A stretch of DNA of 64,000 nt from Klebsormidium nitens (Eukaryota > Plantae > Klebsormidiophyceae). Under the pieces are notes generated by a model. It did no database searches, was not told the origin of the DNA, and worked only from the letters and a program-made list of their open reading frames with translations. The stretch spans positions 124,001-188,000 of the forward strand of contig DF237008.1 in NCBI GenBank assembly GCA_000708835.1, written 5' to 3'. Shown piece by piece: positions 1,997 to 12,827 of this stretch. The translations under genes and the position numbers were made by a program. Each line of letters opens with the position of its first letter. The first letter of the stretch is position 1.

Positions 1997-4900
1997 TCAA
2001 TTTTCAAGCGCCGATCGCTCTTCCATCATGCTGCTTTCTCCGCTTTCCTTATCATCCGACTCAGAACCGTCCGGCTGCTTAGCGCCCTCCGGCCGCCCCT
2101 CCAATTCTGACGTGCCCAGAGCACCGTCCCCCCCCTCCACGTCCAACAGGCTCAATTCGTGAAGCTCATTGAGCAGCCTTTCCTCCCCCTCGAACCCCCC
2201 CAGAACGACCGCCCGCGTTCCTCCTCCAACCACGCACGTGCTGTGGCCCCACGCATACTGGGGCAACAAACCGGGAGCGTTTAGCATCCGCCACGATGGC
2301 CGTCCCTCCTTCGGATCCAGAACATAAAGCTGGATCGGGGAGTGTTGCCCAGCCACGCTTCCCCCGAAGATCAACACCCGGCCTCCGGGAAGCGTTGCGG
2401 CCACGTGATCTAATCGCGGGGGCGGCGACGGGCCTGTCGCGGGCGCCCCTCCCGGCAGCATGCTGCCCGTCAGGTAGTTCCAGTTCGGCTCCTGGATCCC
2501 CACGTCGATCGTGAACACGTCGCTCGACCGCAACCGCAGCGGCCCCGACTGCGCCAGCCCCCCAAACATGAGCACCTTGCTCCCCTCTAGCACCGACAAA
2601 CTGTGCCCCAGGCGCGAGGGCGGCTTGAAGCCGCCCACGATCTCCCGCCACACCGGTTTCTGCGCCGTCAGATCCAAGAGGAACGTGTCGCTCAGTAGCC
2701 GGCCCGTGTCCGTACACCCCCCGAAGACGACGAGGTACGTCCCGTCGACCGTGCACGAACTGTGCCACGAGCGCGGGAGAGGCGGCCCGGCGCCCGCGAC
2801 CTCGCGCCACGCGGGGTGCTCCGCATCGAGGTCCAGGACGAAAACGTCGTTGAGCGGGCCGTCGGTGCCGCACCCCCCGAACACGACGAGCCAAGAGCCG
2901 TTCAGGCAGCAGAGCGTGTGTCCCCACCGGCCGGGGGGGGCTGCGCTGACGTCCACATGACGCCAGGCCGGGTGCTCCAAGCTCAGGTCCAGCACGAACG
3001 TGTCGTTCATCGGCTGCATGTTGACGCCCTCGCCACCAAAGAGGACGAGCTTGTTGCCAACCGCGCACTCGCTAAAGTTGCAGCGAGAGGGCTCCACGGA
3101 ACCCCCGACGGTGAACTTGCGCCAGGCAGCGGCTTCGAGAGTGGTGAGCTCGCGGGCGATGCGGGCCCACCCGAGGGATGGGGTTTGCGAGTCGAGGGCA
3201 GCCTGGATGGCGGCCGCCGTGTTGTGGCCCCACGAGTTCCGGCAGACGCGCTTCCAGATGTAGTCGTCCTGACCCAGCCGCCGAAAGCGCCTGAGGGAAA
3301 AGACAAGAGCGTTTTGAGTCCAGACGATGGAGAGAATGTTTGTGCGCTCTGAACCTTGAGAGGCCGCTAAAGGAGGTTTTCAAAAAGGAACTTGTCAACT
3401 CCAGAAGGAACGTCCTATCTGGTGCACAGAACTAGAAAAAGCGTGCTTGAGCAAAGTTCTTGGTGTGCAGGCGGGAAGCAGGAAGCGGGAGACGAGAGCC
3501 GTCTCAAAGACTAGAAACGAATGTTCGAAATTCAAAACTGAATTTTATCTCAGCTCAGACCGTTATCGTCATCACGAACAGCCTCATTGTGATCTCCTCT
3601 ATGCAATCCGCCGCAATCTGGTAGCCTTGACAGTGATATCGAGCACGTAGAACGAGCTCAACGCACGTCCAAAACTTGATCATCAACCGCAGTCGAAACA
3701 TTCGAACTAATGAGGAACTTCTACAAAGATGCAGACGAATTTTGCGCAGTGCATGTTGGTCCAGGGCTGATCTCCAAAACAGGGTGGAAACCCGTTACAT
3801 GCGAAACGCACTTGACGGCAGGCTTTCTTACAGACGTTCTCCTCATGAGCAACTAGATGGTCTGTACTATTATCGACTGTCGTTCAGTACGGTTGCTGAA
3901 AGCAAACGGAACGGCCGGACAAGCGAGGATTGCGAACGGAGAGCACAAGTGGAGAGACAGGCTCCGTGGGGAAATAGGCATCAGCAGACCACAGGGTGAG
4001 TGAAAGAAAGCTGAGCAAGGGGAGAACCACTAAAGAGCACAAGATAAGTTCAAAATCACAGATGAATAGTTTGTAGAAGTTCTTCGCCTTCCATTGTCAA
4101 TAAGCAAGCACTGACCCAAACACCCACCCTCAGGAAGCTTCAAATCCTGCCTAATACCTTTTCTCCCATTCTCAAGCCCTTAAACATACTTTGAACCTTC
4201 GTATGCCGAATCTCACCTGCAGACCATTGAGCATATGGCAACGTCCTTCGGCGCGAGCCGCCCAAGTATTCTGCTGACCAGCACCTCGTCGCTCAGCGCC
4301 TCGAAGACAGCAGGGTTGTGCCGAGAGGCGCCCCCAAACGTCCCCGCAGCAAAAGATTCCTCAGATGGTTGCACTGGAGGGAGTTCAGAGTGTCGCACAG
4401 GGGGGACGTCCTTCCAGGGGCGCTCAGGGAGGGGACCGAGGTCCATTTTGATGGGGCGGAAGGACTGGATGCCAATGAAGTGGGTGACGATACCGTCCTC
4501 GCCGTGAATTGGCGTCATGAGGAGGTTGTTTATTAGGGGGGTGCCTGCGAGGACAAAAGGCTGGAGTCAACCACGAGGCTGGGGGTTCAGTTCAAATGGT
4601 TCTTCAGGTAACATGAGCCTGCTTCATCAAGCAGACTGCTTAATTGGGGTGTGCCTGAAGGAAAGACTGAATGGTCAGACTCAGAGGCTTCAAGAATGTT
4701 CAGACTTGTATGATTGAATACAACTCCGAAAAAGCAGATTGTCTGGCACTGATGCCAGACAAGAGACGTTAGCTTGATTACCAATCTGTTGCTGAGAACC
4801 ACAACTTGGATACTGTTCGCGAATATGCTTGAAAAGGCGACAGCTGATTACAGACATAGAAAAAGCTTGTGAATAGACTTAAAAGCTTAGGCAATCTGTT

Positions 4901-11400: not shown

Positions 11401-12827
11401 AGTTTGTGCCGTCGTCGGGTTGGCATCCGAACGGTGCCCAGCACGCCCCCCAGACGGGCAGCAGCAGCACCCCCCACAGGAGCGCAACCGCTGAGGGGGT
11501 CCCTGCCTGGGCAGCTCCCCGAGTCAGCCAGCAACCCCCGGCGCAAGAGCACTTTTCTCGGGGGGCGCTGGTGCACTCCCACGGTCAGGAAATGCAGCAG
11601 AGGGGCCACAACGTGGAGAGGAGGGACAGTCTGCCGACCCCCCCAGAATACGGAAGGACGCGGCACGTAGGGGCGAGCTCGAACGCCGGAAACTCTGCAC
11701 CTCCTCCCGAGTACCACAGGTCAGCGTTCCAGGGGGATGCTCGGAGGGGGACAGAGGGGGGGGAGGGCTCCTGGCAGAATAGTCACCGCCCCCCCTACTT
11801 TCCAGAGCCACAGTTCGCGGGGATGGTTCCGAGCAACATGGGGGCGATGGCACAGCTTCCCCCCCACTTTTACATGCCTCCTCACGTTCAGGGGGGTGGC
11901 CGTGAGTCCAGCAAAGCAGATTACAGCTCGGGGGGGAGCGGAAGGGACCACAGCCCCCCCACAGTTACACCCCCCCGGGAAGAGCGGTCACAGAGTTTTG
12001 GCGAGGCCGCCTCGGGGATGTTCGGGATGCCCCCTCAGATGCAGAACGGGATGCCCCCCCAGATCCCCAACGGAATGGCCTCCAACGGAATCCCCAATGG
12101 AATGGCCCCCCAGCTGCCAAACGGAATGCAGCTGCCCTCCGATCTGCTGATGAACCCGCACCTCGCGATGTTCAACCTCCCCCCCGGGATGATGCCCCCG
12201 ATGCCGCTCCCCCCAGGAATGCCCCCGGGCCTCGCGGCCGGCCTCATGGGCCAGATGCAGTTCTCCCCCTTCTTCCAGAACATGCTCAACCCGCACCTCA
12301 TCCGCCCCCCCGTTCAGAGAGTCCCCACTCCGCCTCCCCCCCCAAACGCCCAGCCTCAGAGCAAGCCCCCCCAGGTTCGAAGCGCGAGGTTTAGCCCCCC
12401 TCCACCCACAACAGGGGGGCCAGTGATCGGTGTCTCAGTAGGGGGGCCGCCGGCCCCCATGTGGCCGTTGCTCCAGGCGGGGGTGGACCGGAAGATGGAC
12501 CAGGCCGAGAGGCGCGAGGCGGCGCTGAGCAAGTTCCGGCAGAAGCGGAAGGACCGGTGCTTCGCGAAGAAGATCCGGTACGCGAGCCGGAAGAAGCTGG
12601 CCGAGGCGCGGCCGCGCATCAAGGGCCAGTTCGTGCGTCAAAAGGAGGGGGGTGCCCCCGGGGGGGGTGGCGACGAAGAAGAACTAGAGGAGGAGGAAGA
12701 AGAGGAGGAGGAGGACGTTGACGAGGAGGAGGAAGACGAGAACAAAGGCGCGCAGCTGCCGGACATCTCGGGCTCGCTGAACGGGAGTAACGACAGCCAG
12801 TCGGCGTTGAATATCGAGAGCCGGTAG
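8466..12827 (+). CDS. TOC1: TIMING OF CAB EXPRESSION 1 / PRR1-type pseudo-response regulator with CCT domain; exons 8466-8592, 9005-9166, 9666-9799, 10240-10431, 10728-10800, 11176-12827
   Basis: [14 protein letters not shown]…LRRCSYK|VTAVESAK…[10 protein letters not shown]…IPVV|MMSQRDE…[29 protein letters not shown]|LGMA carries the TOC1-clade signature. C-terminal [42 protein letters not shown] is a CCT domain. Exon 5 is less certain. Confidence 0.92.

Follow-up and report, generated by a model that had tools for sequence, protein, structure and literature searches.

Michael 2022 (PMC9516744) reported physical linkages between clock genes, namely CCA1-PRR9, RVE4-PRR7, PIF3-PHYA, PHYB-LKP2 and SRR1-BOA. 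In that study no sMYB-PRR linkage was found in charophytes, bryophytes or lycophytes, and neither Klebsormidium nor a ZTL-TOC1 pair was mentioned. At the level of function, TOC1 is the substrate on which SCF-ZTL of Arabidopsis acts (Mas et al. 2003, as cited in later work). The Arabidopsis TOC1 promoter is controlled by CCA1/LHY via the evening element (Alabadi et al. 2001; Harmer et al. 2000; as cited in later work). Linde 2017 inventoried ZTL and TOC1 genes without treating synteny or adjacency, and Ferrari 2019 treated the genes separately. Here, we explored a 64,000-nucleotide stretch of the Klebsormidium nitens nuclear genome (assembly GCA_000708835.1, contig DF237008.1, positions 124,001 to 188,000), hereafter the window, in which a ZTL/FKF1/LKP2-family gene and a TOC1-clade pseudo-response regulator (PRR) gene lie side by side. 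All positions are counted from the first letter of the window.

We consider it fairly probable that this is a lineage-restricted divergent pair, in which the spacer is chiefly an evening promoter of TOC1 of the land-plant type, with ZTL sharing at most part of it. The new points are the immediate adjacency of the two genes, the ~610-bp untranscribed spacer, three conserved evening elements, and the survival of the pair in Klebsormidium lineages that have diverged deeply. As the original prediction supposed, the adjacency appears to be undescribed: it is mentioned in none of Linde 2017, Ferrari 2019 and Michael 2022, and full-text searches found no other description. The gene identities had already been annotated and published.

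Layout of the gene pair

The ZTL-family gene (kfl00059_0220, protein P0001) occupies 1997..7580 on the minus strand, as supported by Pfam, RNA contigs and exon reconstruction. The TOC1-clade gene (kfl00059_0230, protein P0121) occupies 8189..12827 on the plus strand, as supported by Pfam, RNA contigs, a tree and an alignment. They are divergent neighbours with no gene between, and they are consecutive gene models in the Ferrari 2019 supplement. The distance from ATG to ATG is 1.36-1.48 kb.

Transcripts were studied over 4900-10800 with the Logan contigs of four RNA runs (X1, X5, X9 and X16), each from a different study, taking contig ends as transcript 5' ends, which are approximate relative to the true transcription start sites. 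The TOC1 contigs begin at 8189 (X5), 8209 (X1) and 8242 (X9). On the other side, the RNA of ZTL exon 1 runs unspliced from 6758 to 7577 (X1) or 7580 (X5), which gives a 5' untranslated region (5'UTR) of at least 470-590 nt. None of the four runs had any RNA depth over 7658-8051. The contig ends and the zero depth define an untranscribed spacer of ~610 bp at 7581..8188, without strand, as the divergent promoter region. Because the two 5' ends are ~610 bp apart and no RNA lies between them, the region can be called a divergent or bidirectional promoter in the usual sense. RNA joints directly confirm five of the eight introns (ZTL 5307/6758 and four GT..AG joints of TOC1).

The head-to-head layout without a gene between, which had been predicted from the window itself, is borne out by the exon sets, by the silent stretch 7658-8051, and by L002, an independent Logan contig of 14 kb that comes from a related Klebsormidium. 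The description of the pair as operon-like was not upheld, because the genes lie on opposite strands and produce two separately spliced mRNAs. An assembly artefact as the cause of the adjacency is ruled out, since L002 covers both genes in the same layout.

In X1 only, contigs with a depth of 2-7, compared with ~100 for exons, were found in ZTL intron 1 (5491-6672) and TOC1 intron 2 (9234-9627). They may be unspliced pre-mRNA or some library DNA.

Evening elements in the spacer

The evening element AAAATATCT has three perfect copies in the 64-kb window, against 0.38 expected, and 0 of 100 shuffles reached three. All three copies fall in the spacer, for which alone ~0.004-0.009 copies are expected. 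Evening element 1 (7631..7639, minus strand) lies ~50 bp upstream of the ZTL transcript end. Evening element 2 (8033..8041, minus strand) and evening element 3 (8121..8129, plus strand) lie ~150 bp and ~60 bp upstream of the TOC1 transcript start, respectively. An evening-element-like core was found at 7835..7843 on the minus strand; it reads GATATTTTC on the plus strand, with the AAATATC core on the minus strand, and lies in a short block conserved in L002. A scan of 7100-8470 gave zero copies of the G-box, the LUX-binding site, the CCA1-binding site, the morning element and the protein box, and a single copy of the telo-box-like AAACCCT, at 8107.

In L002 all three evening elements are intact, with order and strands unchanged, at 3659(-), 4047(-) and 4135(+), and so is the core at 7835. 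The surrounding sequence is only ~70% identical between K. nitens and L002 over 7600-9183. Linde 2017 listed one CCA1-clade and one LCL/RVE-clade MYB gene in K. nitens.

Identity of the two genes

The coding sequence of ZTL consists of four exons with GT-AG introns (6990-6758, 5307-5171, 4544-4217 and 3290-1997, with the stop at 1997-1999), which reproduce the annotated protein exactly. This protein, P0001, is annotated as "clock-associated PAS protein ZTL [Klebsormidium nitens]" and has 663 residues; its Kelch exon 2000-3289(-) matches at 100%. Pfam detected PAS/LOV, F-box and Kelch domains on the pieces of open reading frame and on P0001, where PAS_9/PAS covers residues 31-150, F-box/F-box-like 211-250, and the Kelch families 283-598. 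The flavin-binding cysteine motif of the LOV domain, GRNCRFLQ, is present. The LOV domain aligned without gaps to the Arabidopsis ZTL LOV structure 5SVV over 128 of 128 residues (E 2e-47), and compared with the phototropin-1 LOV domain 2Z6C (111 vs 102 residues) it has the 9 extra residues of the family's characteristic loop. The closest matches outside Klebsormidium were LOV proteins, ZTL, adagio and MpFKF, with 65-73% identity. Linde 2017 counted one ZTL-family gene in K. nitens. The gene is the single pre-duplication co-orthologue of ZTL, FKF1 and LKP2.

The start codon of ZTL is ambiguous. The NCBI model uses the ATG at 6990, and further in-frame ATGs are found upstream at 7104 and ~7059. 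The ZTL protein in the alignment of Linde 2017 begins with MED, which matches the start at 7104, and 6990-7070 is conserved like coding sequence in L002. The original prediction placed the gene starts at 7152 (minus strand) and 8466 (plus strand). The TOC1 start at 8466 was correct, whereas position 7152 is a GTG that heads the open frame rather than a start codon.

The 5'UTR of ZTL (7105-7580, minus strand) is long and contains nine upstream ATGs. Within it, the block 7168-7235 (CCTATTTCA...GGGGAGCATTTCCGCGCCCCAAAGAACCA) is near-identical in L002, and 24 nt of this block (7175-7198) have a weak match of 83% identity (E 0.07) in a further Klebsormidium lineage, that of contig L001. The 5'UTR of TOC1 (8189-8465, plus strand), at least 277 nt long, has five upstream ATGs, and one upstream open reading frame of 40 codons crosses the main ATG. 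The upstream ATGs in these two long 5'UTRs point to possible translational control.

The coding sequence of TOC1 consists of six exons with GT-AG introns (8466-8592, 9005-9166, 9666-9799, 10240-10431, 10728-10800 and 11176-12827), and again the annotated protein is reproduced exactly. P0121 is annotated as "pseudo-response regulator 1 [K. nitens]" and has 779 residues; the open reading frame 11184-12824(+) matches it at 100%. P0121 and P0001 are each placed on a scaffold of 260,234 bp. Pfam placed Response_reg at residues 19-130 and CCT at 676-718 (E 2e-17). Residue E69, within ILSEVEFP, falls in a column where Glu is invariant across MpTOC1, barley TOC1, PRR7 and PRR5; we take this column to be the phospho-acceptor position of the receiver, with Glu for Asp. 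The N-terminal 260 residues are 50% identical to those of MpTOC1, including one identical string of 31 residues.

The original prediction would not have stood with a PRR outside the TOC1 clade. In an unrooted maximum-likelihood tree of 38 proteins, the TOC1 side and the PRR3/5/7/9 side were separated with 100/99 support, and the K. nitens protein fell inside the TOC1 side, which has 22 rows comprising KnTOC1, MpTOC1, fern, lycophyte and seed-plant APRR1s, and barley TOC1. This is in accord with Linde 2017, in which KfTOC1 groups with AtTOC1 and a second K. flaccidum PRR groups with PRR3/7. Judged by its sequence, the K. nitens PRR is a TOC1-clade member, and the sole one in this alga. Pfam, the annotated proteins, the 5SVV alignment and the tree therefore agree with the predicted identities of both genes, ZTL/FKF1-family and TOC1.

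An EAR-like LxLxL motif was noticed in TOC1 exon 5 (10728-10800), which aligns with PGLELTLKPSS in MpTOC1 and PVLELSLKPST in a Diphasiastrum TOC1-like protein. Arabidopsis TOC1 is not known to carry the EAR motif found in PRR5/7/9. From these alignments, a co-repressor motif may have been retained in the TOC1s of non-seed plants.

Conservation within Klebsormidium

We investigated whether the pair persists in other Klebsormidium lineages. L002 carries ZTL exons 3, 2 and 1, the spacer and the whole of TOC1 in head-to-head order, and its exons are ~80-87% identical to those of K. nitens at the nucleotide level. A third lineage was found in one JGI metagenome, in which ZTL is on contig L001, extending 793 bp beyond exon 1 on the upstream side, and TOC1 is on contig L008. 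The ends of L001 and L008 overlap by 55 nt at 100% identity, which would join the genes head-to-head. The ATG-to-ATG distance in this lineage is 3.46 kb, compared with ~1.4 kb in K. nitens. At 4-fold degenerate sites, the identity between K. nitens and this lineage is 0.44-0.48, that is, ~one substitution per neutral site.

The block surrounding element 3 is also conserved in the third lineage. This lineage has two evening elements, whose distances are 0.4 and 0.8 kb to the ATG of TOC1 and 2.7 kb or more to the ATG of ZTL. Because they are near TOC1 and far from ZTL, the elements travel with TOC1, and the tight spacing to ZTL is not conserved. At ~1 substitution per neutral site, a 9-mer without a single change marks a real footprint.

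The neighbouring gene gives a view of local rearrangement. Its first exon lies at 142-537(-) in the window, at 9775-10251 in L002 and at 15954-16213 in L001, so that it adjoins the pair in all three lineages; this exon had no Pfam match. The gene has three different positions or orientations in the three lineages with the pair intact, and therefore at least two local inversions have occurred without breaking the pair. Between K. nitens and L002, the ZTL-TOC1 block is inverted as a unit. The survival of the pair through these rearrangements is suggestive; two rearrangements are too few to show selection.

It is possible, if doubtful, that the two genes are adjacent by a neutral accident and share no regulation, that the elements serve TOC1 only, and that the pair has persisted in the genus because few breakpoints happened to fall there. 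The genome is compact: the numbering of genes along a 260-kb scaffold implies ~one gene per 6 kb, and genomes of this kind often have head-to-head neighbours. The size of the spacer, 1.4 kb vs 3.5 kb, is not conserved either, and the mRNAs are uncoupled in run X16 (see below). However, the chance that two named genes among ~17,000 are adjacent is ~1e-4, and for any pair among ~ten clock genes it is ~0.5%, although the latter estimate was made after the fact. The conservation of element 1 beside the ZTL start in two lineages also speaks against an accident.

Expression of the two genes

The Ferrari 2019 supplement gives kfl00059_0230 an adjusted JTK p of 1.2e-13 with lag 12 in the diel series. 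In this series, its level in transcripts per million is ~1 early, ~215-290 at the sixth time point, and ~1 at the end. The TOC1 mRNA thus has a dusk peak with ~250-fold amplitude, as expected for an evening-element gene.

The depth of RNA contigs is a poor measure of expression, and with this limit the depths of ZTL and TOC1 were 99 and 104 in X1, 56 and 53 in X5, and ~5 and 11.5 in X9. In X16 the depth was 3-6 for ZTL and 0 over exons 1-4 of TOC1. Because X16 contains ZTL without the 5' exons of TOC1, the two mRNAs are not strictly coupled. The original prediction of one bidirectional promoter is correct as regards a short shared upstream region, with 5' ends ~610 bp apart. Its suggestion that the pair could couple the synthesis and turnover of TOC1 is somewhat weakened by X16 and by the 3.5-kb spacer of the third lineage, where evening elements are present on the TOC1 side only. 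In Arabidopsis, the ZTL mRNA is constitutive. In Marchantia, the MpTOC1 mRNA is rhythmic and the MpFKF mRNA is not (Linde 2017).

These data bear on the suggestion that the pair is a selected module, in which the spacer would co-activate TOC1 and the F-box protein that destroys it, and selection would hold the genes together. We regard this as unlikely, and the same holds for its corollary, an incoherent feed-forward circuit that would sharpen the TOC1 protein pulse. The position of element 1, ~50 bp from the ZTL transcript end, with elements 2 and 3 near TOC1, would suit such a module. So would the retention of the pair in three lineages at a neutral divergence of ~1, with the neighbour moved or inverted and no breakpoint inside the pair; the depths, poor measure as they are, that are high for the two genes alike in X1 and X5 and low for the two in X9; and the first appearance of both gene families in Klebsormidium. 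However, X16 has ZTL at a depth of 3-6 and none over TOC1 exons 1-4. The third lineage has a wider spacer (3.46 kb), with its elements 2.7 kb or more from the ZTL ATG but 0.4-0.8 kb from that of TOC1. Moreover, the MpFKF mRNA is non-rhythmic while that of MpTOC1 is rhythmic (Linde 2017), land plants work without the linkage, and two local rearrangements are insufficient to show selection. A selected co-regulation module of E3 and substrate is therefore somewhat disfavoured.

A stronger version is quite improbable in our view. It holds that ZTL/FKF and TOC1 began, or were fixed early, as a head-to-head unit under one evening-element enhancer, so that their co-production at dusk formed a hard-wired pulse generator. 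Selection would then have kept the pair through inversions, and land plants would later have switched to GIGANTEA-dependent post-translational control of ZTL.

Distribution outside Klebsormidium

The comparison set consisted of land plants and metagenomic TOC1-like loci, with Zygnematophyceae and Coleochaete represented by transcriptomes only; starting from a Zygnemopsis ZTL, the algal matches were all transcriptome-derived proteins. On Marchantia AP019868.1, the coordinates are 14.01-14.03 Mb for MpFKF and 9.33-9.35 Mb for MpTOC1, which places the two genes on the same chromosome, 4.7 Mb apart. No PRR or ZTL-family gene was among the genes called within 10 kb of these loci. Arabidopsis ZTL and TOC1 are both on chromosome 5. 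The sharing of one chromosome in Marchantia, and likewise in Arabidopsis, is probably due to chance.

The neighbours of the Selaginella ZTL gene are a chromomethylase and a DUF4079 gene, not TOC1. Locus tags assign the Diphasiastrum ZTL to chromosome 17 and its TOC1 to chromosome 15; for Ceratopteris they indicate chromosomes 14 and 18 for ZTL-family genes, and 5 and 26 for TOC1-like genes. In several angiosperms ZTL and TOC1 are on different contigs. Seventy metagenomic TOC1-like loci were collected with a profile of the TOC1 pseudo-receiver; a ZTL/FKF homologue was found in none of them, ~20 having at least 5 kb of upstream sequence. These loci are mostly land-plant-like DNA, several represent the same plant in different samples, and no further relatives of Klebsormidium are among them. 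In two other TOC1-like contigs, L010 (liverwort-like) and L011, no ZTL was found within 1.5-1.7 kb upstream of the TOC1-like gene, a stretch too short to decide.

Linde 2017 reported that mosses and hornworts are without TOC1, and Chara is without canonical copies of both ZTL and TOC1 (PMC13639390). Klebsormidium is the earliest-branching lineage reported with both ZTL and TOC1-clade genes (Linde 2017; PMC13639390).

The proposal of an ancestral streptophyte arrangement is therefore not supported: the microsynteny comparison gave linkage in two other Klebsormidium lineages and none in Marchantia, Selaginella, Diphasiastrum, Ceratopteris or the metagenomic loci examined. That the pair dates from the origin of both families and was broken later toward land plants is very unlikely: Klebsormidium is indeed the earliest lineage with both genes, and MpFKF and MpTOC1 still share a chromosome, but adjacency is absent from all these land plants and from the ~20 metagenomic loci with at least 5 kb upstream, one shared chromosome of ~nine is expected by chance ~once in nine, and Chara, having lost the canonical copies (PMC13639390), is uninformative.

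Proposed mechanism and significance

Under the lineage-restricted reading, each gene of the pair would have its own core promoter. The three conserved AAAATATCT sites would be the targets of morning CCA1/RVE-type MYBs, which would restrict TOC1 transcription to dusk, as suggested by the enrichment, the conservation and the phase of expression. The MYB input may extend in part to ZTL, because element 1 directly precedes the ZTL start in K. nitens and in one relative. By analogy with Arabidopsis, the ZTL protein would in turn promote degradation of TOC1 in K. nitens.

Several points weigh against this reading. The transcript contig ends approximate the transcription starts, and the layout in the third lineage is deduced from the 55-nt join between L001 and L008. 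An older origin followed by loss is hardly likely; it would be compatible with Zygnematophyceae and Coleochaete lying outside the genome comparison.

The locus represents a compact clock wiring in the earliest-branching streptophyte with both genes, in which a spacer joins TOC1 to an F-box photoreceptor gene of the type that, in Arabidopsis, mediates TOC1 degradation. On firmer ground, the cis-logic of land plants, from CCA1/RVE through the evening element to TOC1, appears to be already in place in Klebsormidium, because the 9-mer has been kept through near-saturated neutral divergence and TOC1 is dusk-phased. If ZTL is co-driven by the same elements, the pair would be one of few eukaryotic examples in which an E3 adaptor and its substrate have a common promoter, and a new kind of pair beside the clock-gene linkages of Michael 2022. 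Otherwise, it would be a lineage-specific curiosity.

Comparison with known systems

The kind of arrangement, that is, linked clock genes and divergent pairs sharing cis-elements, is already known. As in the pairs of Michael 2022 (PMC9516744), functionally interacting core clock or light-signalling genes are physically close in a plant genome. However, those pairs are from angiosperms, have 1-12 intervening genes and involve other partners, whereas the Klebsormidium pair has none intervening and shares an upstream region.

The protein pair resembles SCF-ZTL and TOC1 of Arabidopsis. The families are orthologous; KnZTL has the LOV cysteine (NCRFLQ), the F-box and Kelch, and KnTOC1 has the pseudo-receiver and CCT. 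The pseudo-receiver is the part of Arabidopsis TOC1 that binds ZTL, and KnTOC1 has it too. Unlike in K. nitens, ZTL and TOC1 of Arabidopsis are not neighbours. K. nitens is also without GIGANTEA, the ZTL-stabilising partner (Linde 2017), and has a single pre-duplication ZTL/FKF1/LKP2 gene. In Marchantia, MpFKF and MpTOC1 are single-copy orthologues of the Klebsormidium pair, but they are 4.7 Mb apart and have unrelated neighbours.

Like the bidirectional promoters of Trinklein et al. (2004, as cited in later work), the locus has two opposite-strand 5' ends that are separated by less than 1 kb, with no gene in the gap. It differs from typical bidirectional pairs in that co-expression, which usually follows from such a layout, is contradicted in at least one run (X16). 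There is also a likeness to the Arabidopsis TOC1 promoter: the identical 9-mer AAAATATCT is found upstream of a dusk-phased TOC1, and CCA1- and RVE-clade MYBs are present. Unlike that promoter, K. nitens has three copies of the element, and they lie in a spacer that TOC1 shares with ZTL.

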